Shown: positions 23,464 through 33,045 of the stretch, piece after piece
How positions within the stretch are numbered: the stretch's first letter is position 1
Layout of the letters: each line of letters begins with the position of its first letter
Origin: Guillardia theta CCMP2712
Lineage: Eukaryota > Protista > Cryptophyta
DNA length: 45,380 nt
NCBI RefSeq assembly: GCF_000315625.1
Contig: NW_005434662.1
Location: forward strand, 1,041,462-1,086,841
Direction of reading: 5' to 3'
Position numbers and translations under genes: made by a program
Notes under the pieces: model-generated
The model's database searches: none
What the model saw: only the letters and a program-made list of their open reading frames with translations
Told to the model about the DNA's origin: nothing

Positions 23464-26165
23464 TCACTTTCCTTCAACTCAGAGTTATTGTCCGCCATCA
23501 GGCGCAGAGAAGAATCTTTCAGTCAGTCTCTCTTGTGCCAGTCTCCTTCCTTGTTCAGACTAGACCAAACCAATGGAAAGCTCTGACGAAAACCTTTTTG
23601 AAAAGCAAATGAATTCCTGCAAGAGAGACTCAACCTGTGCTTCAACCATCAGGATTATCTCTGCATATGCTTGCTGCGATAAAACTAAAGAAACATCAAC
23701 GTCAATGGTCGTCATTTTCATCAAATGACAAGACTCCAGCAACAATTGTGGTACAAAACAAAACAAACTAGTCACCGGCTTCCACGATAGTTATCATTCA
23801 CCTCATTCTGCCTCTCTATCTTCCCTGCAAACTTTCTTCTACATCTTCTCTCCTCTCTCCTCCTCCTCCCTCGATCATCTTCGCTCCTTCGCCCTCCCTC
23901 TCTCCCGTTCCTCTTGCCGTTGCGCGCCTGCAATGCACCTAGCCATATTCCAATCCTTCTGTACTACCCCTCTAGTTTCCCTCAAATAGGGGGGTCATCA
24001 TGACGGGGTTTTTACTCCAGACAAAACAATGTATTTTATTAAAATGAACCTGAATCTGGTACCCTCATCCCCTCCCGGACCAACCTGACGGCCTTGCTGG
24101 CAGTTACACGGGCAGTTATTCCTAAAAAACCAGTCGAGGCCCAACAATGACTTTTAACACTAAATTATTTTAAAAGATCCCACCACCCCACCCACAATTC
24201 ATTGTCAGTGGCTACTGTAGTACCCACATAATACCTCTAGAAATGGGGGGTCACAGGCAGGCGGGTGGTACCATGTCGCCGGGACTCTGTAAACCACTTG
24301 TTGTGGGCATTGCGTGCAACCGCAATCCTGATCGGGCAAGTAAGTAAACTCGCTATGTTTTGTATCATATCCTTCCCAAAGATTATAATCTCCCAAGGGA
24401 GCATCTATAACTATTTTATTTAATGTACCGGTGAAATTCGAGAGAGAACCACCGGTACCAGGTACATTTTTTAGCTAATAGTTATATACTCTTGCCAGGA
24501 TCCCCATGAGGAAAGTTACATGTGCCATGACCGTCATGGTGTGGTTGAACCAGAGCCAGTTCTGTCATCGTCGCGTTGATCTGCTTCATCATCTCCATAT
24601 TAGTTTCTCTCTATCTCTGCCCCTTTGTGCCTGTGCCTGTGGGTGCGTTTTTGCTCGCGTGCAAGGTCTGCTAGCTTCACTCGCTCCTCCCTTCATCATT
24701 GTTGTCACTATCATTTCCATCATTTGTAACCCTTTTGATATATCTCTCCCTCTCCCCACCGCCCCCCCTTCCAATCATCCCTCGTTTTCATCGTTCTTAT
24801 TCATCTTCCAGCTGGTTGTAATATCTCTCAAAGACCTCATTTCACTCCTACCCACACTACAGATACAGTCATGCATATGGTCATCATCGTCATATCGAAT
24901 ATCGAAACCGTTGTATGTAATCATATTCGTCTCGCCACCACCATCACAACTATCTAACACTACTATAAATGACGCATAATGATGATCGCAATCATAGCCA
25001 TGGTCCACCTCCACTTCAATCGCCATCGGCACGCCAACCTCCCCTCCCAAACCGCTTCCCCCAACATCTCCTTCACCATCACCAGATCAACACTACGAAA
25101 ACCACCACATTCTGATCGTCCTCTCTCATCATTGTGAACACCATCGCTCTCATCACCACCACCACCTCCTCCTCCTCCACCACCGTCACTACCTGTATTA
25201 CGGTCAACGTTCTTGTCCTCGGTTTCATCTTCATCATCAAAATCTCCAAAATTGTCATAGTCATCATTTTCACCTATCCAATCGTTCACTTTCACCGCTC
25301 TCTCCCGGTTCCTCCTCCCTTTCTCCCCTGCTGATCCTCCTCCTCTTCTTCCCCTTCTTCCTCCTTCCGCCCCCCCTTCTCCCCCTTTCAAGGCTTCCGG
25401 CTCCTTGCCTCTGCTCCCCTTCTCGCATCACCCCTTCCCCTTCACTCTTCCCTCTCCCCCTCCATGCCAGAATCCCGGCTCCCTATCATGGTCTTGATTT
25501 TTATCATCATTGTCCTCGTCGTCATGATCCTCCTCCTCCTCTCATTGTCATTGTCATTGTCCTGACTAGTCCTCGTCATCATCATTCAAGCATCATCATG
25601 GTCACGGTCATGGTCATGATTGCCCTTTATCTCCTCCTTGGCCACCTCCTCCTCATCTCTCGATGCAACTCGTCTCACATGACAACCGAGATCAACGAGC
25701 TATCTAACAGCAGTGCATTGCTCTTTTTGATTTATTTTCATCCTCGTGAACCTCATTTTGTCAATTGACCTTTTGTCTCCTTCTCTGTACCCTATATATT
25801 TTTGTGTTTAAAATGTTTTAAGAGTCAAAAGGGGACCACGCCGTTGAACATGCTAGGAGGAGAAAGAAGAGCAGAACAAGAAGATTGAAGGGAGCTTGTG
25901 CAGTAACAGGAGTTGAGTGGAGGAAGTTGAGTAAGACGACAGAGCATTAGACCAGAGTATGAGACGTGGGTCAACACAAGGTTGATCATGGTTGAGCAAT
26001 CATTGATTGATTCAGATTAGAGACGAACCCAATAGAAGTTGCACCCTAGAAGGCTACCTGTGATCAATGTGATAGTATATGTGATGAAAGTGCTGTATTC
26101 CAATGTGAATTCATGTGCTATCATCTTGTGCTTGCTGACTTTTTGATTCTTTTAGTTAATGAACG

Positions 26166-27123
26166 ATGTCGTTCGCAGCCCTCGATATCGAACCAATCAC
26201 AGCCGATGACAAGATCCTGGAGATGCTCCGGTCATGTGGAGACAAGTTCTCAGATGAAGAGGATACCGAGACAGACGATTCTTCTGCCCCTCAGACTCCA
26301 ACCCACGCTCTTTCCTTCAGCACCCGCAAGGCCGATTCCACCACCGCACGTCTGAACCTTTCGCCGTCTAAAGGGCTTGATGTCGACCAGGAGGAAGCTT
26401 ATGAGGCGATCAACTCCGATGAAGTCGATCCTGCGCATGTCACGATTGCTGCGGATCTCAAGATCCCCGATATCGAGTGGAGAACGACACAATCTCCGGT
26501 CTTGACAAGAAAATCTCTTGACGACACCTTTAAGGAGTTTGTCCTTGCCAACACAGACGCCAAAGAAAGAGAAGAAGTCAACGATGATGATGAAACTCGC
26601 CAAGACGCTGATCACACTGGAGATGTCATGGTTCATGCGCTTCAACTCAAGAATGATGGTGATAAGAACGAGTCGCTACTTGAGACGTGTCGAACTGACT
26701 TGCAAGACCTGGATGAGGAAGTCTTGGAGGTAGAGAAAGCAGCGCTGATAAAGATGGAGAGCATACGAGAAGACGAAGACGAAGACGAAGACGAAGAGGA
26801 CGAGCAAGTTGGAGCTGATCTCCCGGTCGCTTCGGAGACGGTGCAGTCAGACTCGGATTCAGACGAGGTGGACAGCATGATCAAGACTCTTAAGATCAGG
26901 CTGGAAGAGTGGAATGAGCTGCCGCTCGCCCCTGCGCCGGCTCACAGCATGAACACACCGCAGGAACCCGCTACTGTTCTCTCTCTCTCCGACCTCCGAC
27001 CGAAGCCTCTGGCTAAAGTTCGCAATGACATTAGGATTGCCTATGAGCCCGTCAAGCAGCAGCACGTTGTCACCTCCGAGTTTCGCACAATGCTGGGCGG
27101 GCGCTTAGAGCATCCCCTGGTCG

Positions 27124-27191
<68 letters not shown>

Positions 27192-27990
27192 TCCTCCTCC
27201 TCCTCCTCCTCCTCCTCCTCCTCCTCCTCCTCCTCCTCCTCCTCCTCCTCCTCTTGTCTTGTACACGCTCTAATCCCACTCTTCGAATTAAGCTGGTGTC
27301 TGTCTTGATGCTGACGTAAGATCAGGTGCGATTGCATGGGCAGTGTACCAAGGTGCAGCAGCAGCAGAAGAGAAGAACGTTGGAGCGAATTTCCCACGAA
27401 ATGAGCGGCGAGGATGTTGAGGAAACGCATCTCGAGAATCTTTCCAAAGTTTTTCTGTCCCGAGGCAAATCGAACGAGTTCAAGAGGTCTGCGCTTGTTG
27501 AGACATGCGAGGGACGAGGAGAGACTTGCGGGAGGCGATGGAGGGGAGAGGAGAGGAGCGGAGGAACGAGGGATGAGGGGAGAGGATGATTTTGTGTCTT
27601 TTCTTATTTTATGGCCCCTCGTAACTTAATTGGCAGACCACTGTCAACTGAGCCTTTGAAAATTGAGTCCGACAAAGAAACCGCAAAGTTGATCCTCGTT
27701 CTTGTGCTCCTCGTTCTCGTCCTCGTCCTCGTCCTCCAACCTCTCTTCCTTGTTCTCTTTGTTCTCCTCTTCGTTCAGCTGTTTTCCGACTTCTCGTTCT
27801 CCTCCTTCTCCTTGCGTCCTCCTTCTCTGGCTCGTACTCTCTCGTGTCTTTTGTCCCCCCTCCCTCTAATGTGGTCGAGGCTTGTCTCTCATGCTTCTAT
27901 TTTCTTGGTCGCAGGTCGACTTTGCTATGGAAGCGACCTGATAACGAGGGACACTTTGCTGCGACAAACAAGCAGAGACGATCGGTGAGA

Positions 27991-28066
<76 letters not shown>

Positions 28067-28182
28067 TGGAGGAGGAGGAGGAGGAGGAGGAGGAGGAGGA
28101 GGAGGAGGAGGAGGAGGGGAGGAGGAGGAGGATCATAATGATCATTATTACGACTATGATGACAATCTTGGTGGTGATGCCG

Positions 28183-28214
<32 letters not shown>

Positions 28215-31200
28215 ACAACTGCTGTTGATCATGATGATCTTGATGACGATGACGATGATGAAGGTAGTGATGATGCTGATGCCGATACTGGTGGTGCTGG
28301 TGGTGGTGGTGGTGGTGATGATGATGATGATGATGTTATATTATCGGGAGGGTTTTGCTGCTTCTGTTGGTGCAAGAAGAGTATAAAGCTAATGACGCGG
28401 CTCAGCAGCGATCAGAAAGTTTTGACATTGACAGCGGGAGGAGCATTCTTCACCGCACCATCGGCATGCTCAAGAAGAGCATCTCAACCCTAGCTGAAGG
28501 AAAACTTCGTGAGCTCTGCCATTGTTGCTGTTTGGCGCTTCTGATCGTCCGCTCAGCAACGGATGGGGAGGTTGAGAGGATTTTCAACCTTATCGATCGA
28601 GAGGGGCAGGGGGAGGTGACGGCTCAAGACATCTTGACAGCCGTTGACAGCAACGAGCTGGTCAGTCATTTCTTCCGCCCAATCATGGAAACAGACATCG
28701 AGAGCGGAGAAAGGTGCGAGAGCCTCTTGTTCTCTTCCCCCGCCTGCTACTTGAAGAGTTTGAAAAGCTGCCTTCTAGTGTCCTTCCGTCCTCCTTCCTC
28801 GATGCCAGACTGGGCGGTATGAGCCTCGAGGTGAAAAGCTGGGAAAGTTTGACAAGGTCTGACGCGAGCTGCGAAGAGCTTCAAGTGTCGTATCGTTGCT
28901 TGTCATCCTGACAGTCAGCTGGACTCGGGAAGAATCAAGGGGAACCATTCGTTCCGAAGGAAGTTGAGCCATCCAGCCACTCCCACTACCAGAATCTCTC
29001 ACGTTAGTACCACTAGAAATCCCTTGCCTTGTCCTCTGCCCTGCTCTCTTCTCTCCTTTCCTCTCCTCTCTCCTTCCCTCTCTTCTCTCCTTTCCTCTCC
29101 TCTCACCTCCTCACCTCCTCTCTCTCGATGCTTCTCATCTGCCTCTGCAGGAGTCTTCGGTGCTCGAGCGCCGACAGTTTCGTGCAATGAGTGAGAGCGG
29201 CAGCAGCGCGCCGATGGCCTGGAGGAACAAGAGTGCCTTCAGACGGTCAGTGGTGGACGACCAGTCGCGGAAAGAAGCAGAGGAGGTGGCTCACTTTCTT
29301 CTCGCTCCTTCTTCCTGCTCTTCACGTGTGTCTCCTCCTCTCCTCCTCTCTCCTGTCTCTCCTGCCTCTTCTTTTCTCCTCTTCTGCCCTTTCTCCCCCC
29401 CCGTCTCTCTCCTCTTCTCCTCTCTCTATGCTGCTGGTCTCAACCCTCCTTGTCTCTGCTTATCCTCCTCAGGTCAACCACGAGGGTCAGCTGGACCCGG
29501 ACGTGGGGCAGCAAGTGCGCGCGCAGTCGAATCTCTGGCTCTACTTCCGCGTGTGTTGGATCGTCGGCATCGCAATTGCTGACCTCATCAGCTTCTTTGT
29601 CCTTCAGATCGGATGGTCTGGCGACTTTCTGTGTGCAGTCGACGAGACGAGGACGAGGCTGAACCGAGGAAACTTTGCGTTCATCGTCCTCCTCATCTTC
29701 TTCCACCTCTGCTACATCCTCCCCATCATCTTCGAGCCCGACTTTGCAGGACGGAGGATATACTGCCCTACCTACGCCTGCCTGATCTCGCAGGGCTTCA
29801 ACCTCTGGTACCTCATCGTCCTCCTCGCCTCCAGCATCGTCCTCGCCCTCCACAGCAGCAGCTGCTTGTCAGCTGAGGTTGACCCCAGCAGTCATCAGCC
29901 CTCCTCCTCTAAGCTTGACGTTAATGCCCGCCTTCACCTTGCTTTGCAGCTGCTTCGCACCATCTCAGCTCTCCATCGCTGCCGCTCGCTGGGCTCTGAC
30001 CTGCGCGTACGGCTGCAGACGGTGGTATCAGTGAACAAGCGGAGGTTCATCGACCCAGACGCCAACCTCAACCTCGACCTCACTTACATTTGCGACCGCC
30101 TCCTCGCCATGGCGCTCCCTTGCGTCGACGGCGCCATGTACCGCAACGACGTGCGGGACGTGGCGAAGTTCTTCTCCTCGCGGCACTTCGGGAGTTTCGT
30201 GGTGGTTAACCTCTGCGAGAACTTTGAGGAGGCAGGCAACGGCAACTACGACTCGTCGCTGCTCTACGGGCAGGTGCAGAAGCTTCCTATGTTCGACCAC
30301 AACGCGCCCACCCTCAAGATCCTCCTCGAGTACTGCGAGCGAGCGACGCGATGGCTGAACGCAAGCAAGAAGAACGTGCTCACCATCCACTGCCGGGGGG
30401 GGAAGGGACGCACAGGTACCTTCGTGTCTGCCATGATGATGTGGACGGCGACCTGCCGGACAGCAGACGAGGCCATGGCGTACTTCGCTCACCGGAGGAC
30501 GCAGCCGTCGCAGACACACAGGGGGATGCAGGGGGTGGATGCGCCATGTCAGAAGCGCTACCTTGGGTATCTGGAGAAGCTGCTGGCTAACGACGGGGAG
30601 ATTGACTTCCTCTCTCCCCGCCTCCTCCTCCTCAAGAGCGTGCAGCTGAAAACGACGCCCAGCTGGCAGAAGCAGGCGTGCCGAGTGTCGTTCATGGTGC
30701 TCAACGGGACCAACCTCATCTTCGACTACGGCAAGGCGCACGGTATCTTCGACCTGCAGACGGAGGACATGGAGAACAGCGTGTGGACGTTCGACCTCGG
30801 GCTGCTGGCAGTCAGCGGCGACATCACGATCCGCTTCTTCTACTTCGACGCTGATGCCGCCATGAGCAACATCGTGGGGCAGCGAGGGGAGCTGCTGCCC
30901 GGGGGGATGGGGGTGAGGTACGGGGGTGTGAAGGGAAAGCTGCTGTGCTTCGTTTCCTTCCACACTGCCTTCCACCAGTCGCGGATCGTGTTCAGCAAGA
31001 GCGAGATCGACGAGGCGTACAACGACTGGAAGCAAGAGCGGTTCTCCGACCGCTTCGAGCTGACCGTTGAAGTGTTTGCGGGGTCATCGGAGGAGGCGAA
31101 AGACTTCTTTGACATCAAGCCGTACTCGGTCAACGGCCTCGATCTGGGACTCCCTCCCGGCATCCGCGAGCTCCAGCTCAAGGAGAGCATAGCCGATATC

Positions 31201-32891
31201 TTCCTGCGCGGCCGCGGGTGCATCGAGCTGGAGGAGGATGCGGAGGTGTCAGGGCTGAGCTGCTTCGGAGAGAAGGGCAAGCTGCTGTGGGTGGAGGAGG
31301 GAGGCGTACAGCTCGAGATCGAGCACATGCGAGCTCCCGACGGGTGCGCACTGGGAATGAATCAGTGCAACTCGTCGATGTACATGGGGAAGGTGGGAGC
31401 TGGAGCTCTGCTGAACATGCGGGAGTGTCTGCTGGGCAAGGGGCAGCCCATGACCAACATGCGATGCGTCGTGAGGAGCAAGCGAGCGAGGCTGCGATGC
31501 CTCGACCTCGGCAGAGACCTGCACCTCCCCAGCTGCCAGGTGGACCTCAGCCCAGCTGACCTCCTTAACCTCTTCGAGACGCTGGCAAAGAACCTCGCGT
31601 GCAAGTCGCGCGACATCGCGGTCCTCCTGCACCAGACGGCGCAGGCGCAGAACGTGAAGCGAGACGCGGAGGCTGGGCAGGCGGACGAGCGCGCGAGGTT
31701 CGTCGCGAGCGTCATCGAAAGGAACGAGCTACCCATCACGGAGCGCGTGATCTTCTCCTGCGAGGCAACGCTGGTGCAGGGGACGCGCAAGGTTGAGGGA
31801 CAGTTCTTCATCTTCTTGGAGTGGGTCATCTTCGCCACCGTCTCCTCCCTCCAGCGCGACTGGCGCATCGCCGTCCATCACATCCGAAGCTTCCGCGCTG
31901 AGAGCGATCGCCTCATCCTCAACCACAGCACCCTGCTCGAGCATGACGGCTCTCCGCTGTCTCACTTCTCCAGCGGGGATGAAAGCTTCCGGCTGCTCTC
32001 TCGCACTTCCACCCTCCGTGGGGACGACAGCGGAAAGCCGCTGACGAGGAGCGTCTCCAACCCGCAAGCCTCGGACGACGAAGTTCCTTCGTCCCCGGGA
32101 CCCCACGCAAGCGCCACGAAGCTGCGCACACGTATGTCGAACCTGCTGACGGGGGAAGGGAAGGGAAGCGAGAAGAGCGACAAGGCGGAGAAGAGCGACA
32201 AGGCGGAGAAGAGCGAGACTATCCTGATGGCCGCGTCTGACCTCCGAATAGCCGAGAAGGTTCTCAAGAAGCTGCAGAACAAGAAGCAGATGGTCCTCGA
32301 GTCTCCTGCTTGGAAGTCTCAAGGTAGTTTCTTCCCCTCACGCGGTCAGAGCGAGCAGCTTCGGTCCTTCGGCTTCGTCCTCGTTAACGAGAGCATCTCC
32401 GACGCCGAGTCCGCCATCTTCTCTCAGCTGCTCGCCAAGTCCAAGCGAGCCTCGTTCCGCTCAGGGGAAGTGATCATGGAGGCAGGATGCGTCAAGCGAT
32501 CTATCATCCACCTCATCAGCGGCATGGTGACGGCACGAGGAGCGACGGGGACGGTGTTCTCGGTGCGGCAGGCAGGGTTGGGAGACTCGATTCTCGGCGA
32601 GCTTGCCTTCTTGGAGAGTGGGAACAAGGGAGCAGGAGCAAGCATCATTGCAGAGTCAGAAGTGGACTGCCTCATCACCTCCTACGACGTCCTCGAACTT
32701 CTCAGCTGCAACGAGCCAATGGTGGGGGCTCGCTTCTACCGGAAGATAGCCATGTGAGAATTTCTGCTCTGCTCTTCTCTGCTCCCCCCTTCCCCCCTCC
32801 CCCCCCCCCCTTCCTCCTCACTCTGTTCAATAGATCCCTCGCACGTCGACTTGAGAAGCAAATCGAGCAGCTTGTCATGACAACAGAGTAA
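26166..32891 (+). CDS. Voltage-sensing-phosphatase (VSP/TPTE)-like protein: acidic N-terminus, EF-hand, 4-TM VSD-like domain, PTEN phosphatase, PTEN-C2, cNMP-binding-like, GRAM/PH-like, cNMP-binding
   Basis: Main exon 29473-32753: VSVNKRRF...LNLDLTYICDRLLAMALP, DHNAP, HCRGGKGRTG (30388-30417); FRSGEVIMEAG...ILGELAFL...ASIIAESEV. Upstream exons, including IFNLIDREGQGEVTAQDI, join in phase by manual splicing (N-terminal joins less certain). Last exon 32834-32891. Confidence 0.85.
27125..27253. repeat. Compound microsatellite (CTG)n(CTC)n, intronic
   Basis: Read directly; lies in the first inferred intron of the VSP-like gene. Confidence 0.9.
27992..28335. repeat. Compound microsatellites (GCT)n,(GAG)n,(GTG)n,(GAT)n, intronic
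   Basis: Read directly; bracketed by a gtgaga donor and a ctcag acceptor. Confidence 0.9.
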
Positions 32892-33045
32892 GAAAGCAGA
32901 GGAGGAGTGACAAGTTTGACTAGTTCTGCAGGTGTGATGGAGACGTGTTTCTTGAAGATTATCTTCATTGAAAGGAGCTTGTACATGAGATGTCAAAATA
33001 ATTTCTTACATGATAACATACAAGGTGACACCAACTTCTTTCTCC

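Follow-up and report, generated by a model that had tools for sequence, protein, structure and literature searches.

The stretch of DNA analysed here (the window) comprises 45,380 nucleotides of the cryptophyte Guillardia theta CCMP2712 (RefSeq assembly GCF_000315625.1, contig NW_005434662.1, positions 1,041,462 to 1,086,841) and holds a gene for a PTEN-type phosphatase on its + strand. Its product is probably a relative of animal voltage-sensing phosphatases (VSPs), in which a remodelled four-helix sensor is combined with a PTEN-type phosphatase, a C2 domain and a tail of cyclic-nucleotide-binding (CNB) and GRAM type, and which belongs to an apparently undescribed protist subfamily. The complete architecture, from the first membrane helix (S1) to the last CNB domain, lies on one exon. 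Voltage and cyclic nucleotides as inputs, both put forward in a preliminary description of this DNA, are properties that we infer from sequence.

Throughout the text coordinates follow the window numbering. A single open reading frame (ORF) of 1188 codons runs from 29191 to 32757 (+). Its first ~94 codons translate a CT-rich tract that closes at an acceptor (cag/GTC, 29472/29473), and the alignments of relatives begin at 29521, with none extending farther upstream and a single frame throughout; we therefore place the main exon at 29473-32753. The GC content at third codon positions (GC3) is 0.80 for this exon overall and 0.72-0.92 across all its 300-nt segments. The junction over the following intron restores the frame (...RKIA-I-SLARRL), and the translation of the terminal exon resembles the CNB C-helix of the relatives P0040, P0002 and P0003. 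A paralog (on C29) matches residues 1157-1207, there in a separate frame. The 3' end at 32891, proposed earlier, is therefore correct: the intron and the last exon complete a C-helix that is kept in the paralog.

29473-32753, + strand: main coding exon, ORF residues 95-1188, S1 through the C-terminal CNB domain, unbroken
32754-32833, + strand: last intron, 80 nt, GTGAGA...ATAG, donor context CCAT/GTGAGA
32834-32891, + strand: terminal exon, 58 nt, (I)SLARRLEKQIEQLVMTTE and stop TAA, finishing the CNB C-helix

The catalytic motifs of the phosphatase are intact and VSP-like. The best sequence matches in the PDB (phmmer) are VSP chains, namely 9c49 (1.5e-37) and Ci-VSP (1.5e-35), followed by PTEN (1.2e-32); 9c49 is deposited as TPTE2, the entry being the Danio rerio VSP, and its alignment begins in the S4-linker. 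The VIA structure search gave a Z of 30.8 to Ci-VSP (3awf), and Foldseek TM-scores by target were 0.85-0.88 for PTEN, against about 0.8 for Ci-VSP. The linker motif SVNKRRF aligns with NKRRY of 9c49, Ci-VSP and PTEN, its N, K and R being invariant or nearly so across 56 sequences. PTEN has HCKAGKGR as its P-loop; the protein in the window has Gly in place of the Ala, which yields the Gly-Gly of Ci-VSP, and its TI-loop carries an acidic residue, again as in Ci-VSP. Pfam also reports DSP/PTP families in the phosphatase region. Overall, phmmer, Pfam PTEN_C2, Foldseek and VIA bear out the PTEN-type phosphatase and C2 domain that had been read here before.

30028-30048, + strand: linker with putative phosphoinositide-binding motif SVNKRRF, ORF residues 280-286, by alignment
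30040-30597, + strand: PTEN/VSP-type phosphatase domain (phmmer, VIA, motifs)
30295-30309, + strand: Asp loop DHNAP
30388-30417, + strand: P-loop HCRGGKGRTG, CX5R, intact
30532-30552, + strand: TI-loop GVDAPCQ, aligned to GVETASQ of Ci-VSP
30625-31107, + strand: PTEN-type C2 domain (Pfam PF10409 4.2e-14, residues 475-627; Foldseek and VIA alignments cover the C2)

Opposite the phosphatase exon an antisense ORF of 335 codons is found (30028-31035, - strand) with a GC of 0.87 at the first codon position. As this mirrors the GC-rich third position of the sense strand, we consider it a shadow ORF and not a gene.

Directly 5' of SVNKRRF, hydropathy and AlphaFold both give four hydrophobic helices (ORF residues 117-141, 159-181, 203-227 and 243-272), in agreement with the four segments noticed earlier. 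The AlphaFold model of 29473-31110, built on the 56 aligned sequences, has a predicted local distance difference test (pLDDT) of 89.2 and a predicted TM-score (pTM) of 0.85, with a pLDDT of about 87-95 in the membrane helices; S4 is modelled as a single helix that runs on into the linker (model residues 145-185).

29539-30027, + strand: four-helix transmembrane domain, probably derived from a voltage-sensor domain (hydropathy, AlphaFold, hhalign, Atlas superposition)
29539-29613, + strand: S1, holding the conserved Asp
29665-29733, + strand: S2
29770-29871, + strand: S3
29905-30027, + strand: S4 and continuous linker helix
29623-29634 and 29851-29865, + strand: clade-invariant Cys in DFLC and HSSSC, respectively

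Three independent lines tie this domain to the voltage sensors of VSPs. When only the transmembrane part was compared with hhalign (17 rows from the clade of the window, set against 29 of canonical sensors, leaving out the last 12 residues before NKRR), S1-S4 aligned in register over 118 columns with a probability of 78.9% and P=1.6e-5, against P=0.29 for the reversed control. In the ESM Atlas, where predicted models are compared on both sides, the best structural match is a chordate TPTE2 cluster (TM-score 0.72, 457 aligned residues, model residues 4-538), while PTEN-only clusters align over about 316-352 residues. Finally, a maximum-likelihood tree of the phosphatase domain places the window in a 13-row clade (support 99/94), the sister of which (99/99) is a clade with the canonical RxxRxxRxxR S4. 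The transmembrane domain thus appears, from alignment and models, to derive from a voltage-sensor domain, and by homology the protein is a member of the VSP family.

The S4 of the window's clade follows the pattern R-x-H-x3-Q/H-x2-R. The clade has an invariant His immediately ahead of the R2 position and conserves the S1 Asp, a DFxC in the S1-S2 loop, an HxxxC behind S3 and a Cys within S4. The positions that are canonical in VSP sensors read as follows.

S4 R1: Arg in the window's clade
S4 R2: hydrophobic in the clade, Leu in the window
S4 R3: His in the clade, Gln in the window
S4 R4: Arg in the window's clade
S2 aromatic-acid-base motif: absent in the window's clade
S3 WNxxD acid: absent in the window's clade

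Behind the C2 domain follows a tail of roughly 570 aa. It begins with a CNB-like domain and a long helix, continues with a GRAM/PH-like domain and a disordered spacer, and closes with a CNB domain. The same layout is common to the relatives P0002, P0003, P0040, P0004 and P0013.

31156-31509, + strand: degenerate CNB-like beta-barrel (family alignments A3, A5; pLDDT 56-84)
31552-31722, + strand: long helix after the first CNB-like domain
31747-31926, + strand: GRAM/PH-like beta-sandwich (AlphaFold strands of pLDDT 73-87; family consensus motif RFxLPxTE...GxFFxFxxWVIF...SIEDI)
31939-32346, + strand: disordered Ser/Lys/Glu-rich spacer (pLDDT 25-50), its length varying among relatives
32401-32753, + strand: C-terminal CNB-fold domain (Pfam PF00027, family profile, VIA)
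32596-32643, + strand: phosphate-binding cassette GELAFLESGNKGAGAS in the C-terminal CNB domain

For the C-terminal domain, sequence profiles and the predicted structure both indicate a CNB fold. Pfam PF00027 gives 22.6-26.2 bits in the window (8e-6 at 26.2 bits), just below the cutoff of 27.5, and scores 3e-11 to 9e-12 in the relatives, and the family profile matches the CNB domains of CRP and PKG at 6e-9. The family profile is needed here: phmmer with the window's CNB domain alone found nothing in the PDB. With VIA on the tail (Z 14.4-11), CNB folds occupy 50 of the 50 rows among the matches listed, and the matches to this fold include CNB domains from SLC9C1, HCN and KCNH. A profile alignment puts GNKGAG of the cassette against GPRTSS of a CRP.

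The two domains before it are each moderately supported. For the first one a CNB-like assignment is suggested, if weakly, by the family alignments and the model: its top PDB profile matches are CRP/CLP (weak, E 0.6-0.8), the alignments of tandem-CNB PKG chains run from model residues 40-47 to about 545-549, covering both CNB domains (at a high root-mean-square deviation), and Atlas cNMP_binding rows span residues 28-315 of the tail model, with TM-scores of only 0.39-0.44. Relatives likewise show a second, sub-threshold cNMP stretch in the tail. The GRAM/PH-like assignment comes from the model and from a protein-language feature search, in which a GRAM cluster ranks first (0.92) and 28 of 100 matches are GRAM; the match shares 158 features, under the 170 typical of the same family. 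Neither Pfam (at E<=10) nor PDB sequence and profile searches gave a match for the domain. For the tail as a whole (residues 640-1188), a word-based search for homologues had no hits. Of the tail as read in the preliminary description, the clear C-terminal CNB domain consequently stands, and the first CNB-like and the GRAM/PH-like domain are retained as tentative assignments.

An exhaustive protein search yielded 4290 PTEN-like proteins, of which the best 150 include canonical protist VSPs as well as the clade with His in S4. The family is found in cryptophytes and environmental eukaryotes, where its members are labelled only as hypothetical or as PTEN-family proteins; the P0005 cluster of the His-S4 clade includes one from the cryptophyte Baffinella frigidus/CCMP2293, annotated as hypothetical, and one canonical VSP cluster contains a choanoflagellate protein. 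Within the genome of G. theta two paralogs, on C29 and C106, conserve the architecture including the CNB tail. Canonical-S4 VSPs are present in this genome as well (loci L004-L006), with WNIFDF in S3 and LRILSRVAVGARVLRILLGIRRARK in S4; the two loci on C21 make up an inverted pair with about 4 kb between them.

C29, about 478300-481930, - strand: paralog (L009) with His-type S4 KVHSHLHMTR, PTEN, C2, CNB tail and a separately framed last exon
C106, 181735-184860, + strand: paralog (L010) with PTEN, C2 and CNB
C21, 458459-459070, - strand: canonical VSP locus
C21, 463032-463643, + strand: canonical VSP locus
C190, 32142-32735, + strand: canonical VSP locus

That sensor-derived helices, linker, PTEN-type phosphatase, C2 and the CNB-like/GRAM-like/CNB tail form one polypeptide, as had been proposed, holds up, given that they share one exon in the window and are kept together in P0002, P0003, P0040 and the paralogs on C29 and C106.

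Several observations weigh against a VSP relative of this kind. The transmembrane region taken alone has no match to Pfam Ion_trans, to PDB profiles or by Atlas features (best Atlas 0.79), and a first hhalign comparison with 7 against 16 sequences was weak (probability 8.7%), the signal appearing only with larger alignments. The alignment used for AlphaFold contained canonical VSPs, which may bias the membrane part of the model toward a voltage-sensor domain. In the whole-model VIA search the rows in the membrane range were only generic four-helix bundles (Z about 11); phosphatase folds filled the match list, which makes this search uninformative on the sensor. Only two of the four canonical S4 arginines (R1 and R4) are kept and the acidic countercharges of S2 and S3 are missing, just the S1 Asp being conserved; the domain thereby falls short of the charge pattern of a classical voltage sensor (at least three Arg/Lys at every third S4 position plus the S2/S3 acids of the charge-transfer centre). 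The AlphaFold model of the tail is of moderate confidence (mean pLDDT 61). At the cassette Arg position the window has Lys and the family K/R/H/I/S, with Gly or a variable residue at the Thr/Ser position behind it, so that of the Gly-Glu plus Arg-Thr/Ser signature the Gly-Glu is invariant and the second part is not kept. Moreover, essentially no RNA reads and no splice joints were found on the gene (26950-32949; 6% of one RNA run).

It might be argued from the reduced charges that the membrane domain is a degenerate, voltage-sensor-like static anchor and that the enzyme, being regulated by its tail alone or constitutively active, is functionally not a voltage-sensing phosphatase. This explanation comes somewhat short of an even chance. 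Besides the lost arginines and the missing S2 acid and base and S3 acid, it agrees with the fact that canonical protist VSPs (P0061, P0085, P0088 and P0133) do have an Ion_trans match. Nonetheless, the clade strictly keeps the Arg, His, Arg and Cys of S4, the S1 Asp and the two loop Cys at a transmembrane identity to the window of only 21-36%, which indicates a constrained function in addition to anchoring; the helix formed by S4 and linker, and its distance to NKRR, also match those of VSPs. With S4 arginines reduced, countercharges lost and a His and two extracellular Cys gained, classical steep voltage sensing by the clade is uncertain and rather doubtful, and the voltage input of the preliminary description becomes doubtful with it; sensitivity to pH, redox or metal, or the role of an anchor, is possible. 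A comparable question concerns the tail, the CNB domains of which could be CNB-homology domains (CNBHDs) that do not bind cyclic nucleotides, as in KCNH, and serve as an intramolecular or protein-protein regulatory module. We regard this as evenly balanced. The variable cassette Arg and Thr/Ser positions, a first CNB-like domain lacking a recognisable cassette and the presence of KCNH CNBHD structures among the fold matches speak for it; on the other side, the Gly-Glu of the cassette is invariant, its Gly-rich GNxGA loop is conserved, and the Lys of the window (or the Arg of P0040) could still contact the phosphate. With Lys in place of the cassette Arg, any cyclic-nucleotide binding in the last CNB domain would be non-canonical; from the sequence of the domain it seems possible, if on balance not expected, and the cyclic-nucleotide input proposed before is likewise in doubt.

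A further alternative extends the gene at the 5' end. According to the preliminary description a single transcript covers 26166-32891 and encodes an acidic N-terminus and an EF-hand ahead of the sensor, yielding a lipid phosphatase with three inputs (Ca2+, voltage and cyclic nucleotides). The features involved are the following.

26166-27308, + strand: upstream acidic ORF, 380 codons (supposed exon 1 = 26166-27119), Asp/Glu/Ser-rich, GC3 0.58-0.62
28355-28660, + strand: candidate EF-hand exon, in-frame ATG 28466, phase-0 donor CTG/GTCAGT at 28660/28661
28595-28630, + strand: EF-like loop DREGQGEVTAQD; position 3 is Glu, position 5 Gln and position 12 Asp
29151-29285, + strand: candidate short upstream exon, ESSVLERRQFRAMSESGSSAPMAWRNKSAFRRS..., acceptor ctgcag/G, one open frame, in-frame ATG 29187, GC3 0.73

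We consider such a transcript unlikely, and put the fusion of an EF-hand to the phosphatase at the same low level. The EF-like loop does lie 812 nt upstream on the same strand, the donor at 28660/28661 is of phase 0 and in frame with the short exon at 29151 and the main acceptor at 29473, relatives carry long N-terminal extensions (170-600 aa), and two of them (P0019 and P0026) have a Ca2+-type C2 domain ahead of the transmembrane domain, so a Ca2+-related module at the N-terminus has precedent in the wider family. Against this, the Pfam score of the EF-hand (EF-hand_6, 0.002-0.0035) is 17-18 bits for a cutoff of 25, and the loop is unpaired, being the only EF-like one within 25000-33000. No EF-like loop occurs in three 10-kb paralog loci, and no EF-hand in the N-terminus of any relative checked. 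GC3 drops from the 0.72-0.92 along the main exon (0.80 overall) to 0.58-0.63 in the upstream ORFs (0.61-0.63 in the EF-hand exon), the EF ORF if unspliced stops by itself at 28822, the short exon's best donor does not keep the frame of the main exon, and the RNA reads lend no support. Of the single upstream EF-hand that had been described, one loop thus remains, sub-threshold and without partner, and for its fusion to the phosphatase only frame compatibility. More likely the EF-hand ORF is a neighbouring gene or an unproven 5' exon. The ORF at 26166-27308 shows codon periodicity but neither a Pfam match nor a genomic paralog, and may form the 5' portion of a distinct EF-hand gene that ends at 28822; for the EF-hand exon, too, a search of the own genome found no paralog. 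The scarcity of RNA reads could also mean that the gene is silent or decaying, and here, in one DNA contig, a run of five G inside the main exon (32151-32155) is one nucleotide short, which, if real, would shift the frame ahead of the last CNB domain. We hold this to be very improbable: the frame is open over 1188 codons with a strong third-position bias, the catalytic residues are intact, and a deletion in a homopolymer, at a contig depth of 3.7 and from a 2011 run, is likely an error.

The most economical gene model lets the VSP relative start shortly 5' of S1, for example at ATG 29187 in the short exon. The membership of this exon in the gene and its exact donor are uncertain. Donors at 29249 and 29285 (each followed by GT) are in phase with the acceptor at 29473; the best-looking one (29245/GTCAGT) fits the frame of none of the main exon's nearby acceptors. 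A start at ATG 29428, inside the CT-rich tract, is unlikely, as it would turn the polypyrimidine tract into a hydrophobic leader, which conflicts with the N-in topology that the sensor needs.

The material mapped on 26950-32949 came from one 2026 RNA-seq run (of which 6% was read), a DNA run and two sets of contigs with the label 'RNA?'. The nominal joints among them fall in CT-rich repeats and have sides of 20-22 nt. Long repeats of trinucleotide and CT-rich type, namely (TGC)n, (TCC)n, (GCT)n and (GAG)n, are located at 27126-27250, 27995-28120, 28180-28340, 29020-29120 and 29290-29470; they fill putative introns or spacers 5' of the main exon and drew all spurious read matches.

In the environmental relatives P0019 (residues 5-94) and P0026 (239-345) the C2 domain N-terminal to the transmembrane sensor matches PF00168 at 1.9e-24 and 1.1e-8, respectively. 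Going by these matches, the C2-sensor arrangement would be another undescribed VSP architecture.

In comparison to known systems, the closest layout is that of the animal and choanoflagellate VSPs (Ci-VSP, Dr-VSP, TPTE/TPTE2), which share S1-S4, the NKRR(Y/F) linker, a PTEN-type phosphatase and C2. The protein in the window differs in its S4 (R1 and R4 only, His/Gln at R3, an extra invariant His), in the loss of the S2/S3 countercharges, in longer S1-S2 and S3-S4 loops that each hold an invariant Cys, and in the added tail. PTEN has the same catalytic and C2 fold, the N-terminal lipid-binding NKRR motif and the CX5R loop; however, it is soluble with a short C-terminal tail, against four transmembrane helices, HCRGGKGR and a long tail of regulatory type in the window.

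Dictyostelium GbpC and GbpD (RasGEFT and RasGEFU) likewise use CNB-type domains together with GRAM as a C-terminal regulatory module. GbpD has cNMP domains and a GRAM domain for membrane localization (PMC1273635), in agreement with the cNB-GRAM-cNB parallel drawn in the preliminary description. In the window the effector is a membrane lipid phosphatase instead of a RasGEF or kinase, the likeness is one of domain combination, and the cassette Arg is not conserved. The sperm Na+/H+ exchanger SLC9C1 and the HCN, CNG and KCNH channels combine an S4-type segment with a CNB-fold domain in one polypeptide (PMC6052114), though as a transporter or pore and not a lipid enzyme, in another domain order and lacking the GRAM and second CNB-like domain. 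VSPs have been described in animals and are mentioned for choanoflagellates (PMC12223298). A literature search found no description of a VSP-type protein with CNB or GRAM domains, so that the earlier remark that this architecture was not familiar from the literature agrees with our search.

For the VSP relative we propose that the transmembrane domain would hold the enzyme at the membrane and that the continuous S4-linker helix would relay conformational changes to the phosphoinositide-binding linker and the active site, as in Ci-VSP. The CNB/GRAM/CNB tail may be an additional module that regulates or autoinhibits the enzyme and targets it to lipids. A far-reaching version is a multi-input lipid phosphatase, in which a sensor with His in S4 and a pair of Cys reads membrane potential together with pH or redox, the tail gates catalysis by cAMP/cGMP and phosphoinositides, and the N-terminus possibly binds Ca2+. 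We consider this version quite improbable; if true, such an enzyme would, in a flagellate alga, link phosphoinositide (PIP) turnover directly to both electrical and cyclic-nucleotide signalling.

For now the result stands at the level of annotation. To our knowledge, no enzymes besides VSPs are driven directly by an S4 voltage sensor, and nearly all VSP studies concern animals. One unicellular alga holds canonical VSPs next to a sister subfamily with a remodelled sensor, in which His takes the place of Arg, countercharges are lost, extracellular Cys are conserved and a CNB/GRAM/CNB module is fused to the enzyme. If active, members of this subfamily may offer new parts for voltage- or ligand-controlled PIP tools. 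They would also allow one to ask with how small a number of S4 charges a VSP can still be driven, and whether S4 and domains of cyclic-nucleotide type co-regulate an enzyme as they do in HCN channels and SLC9C1.

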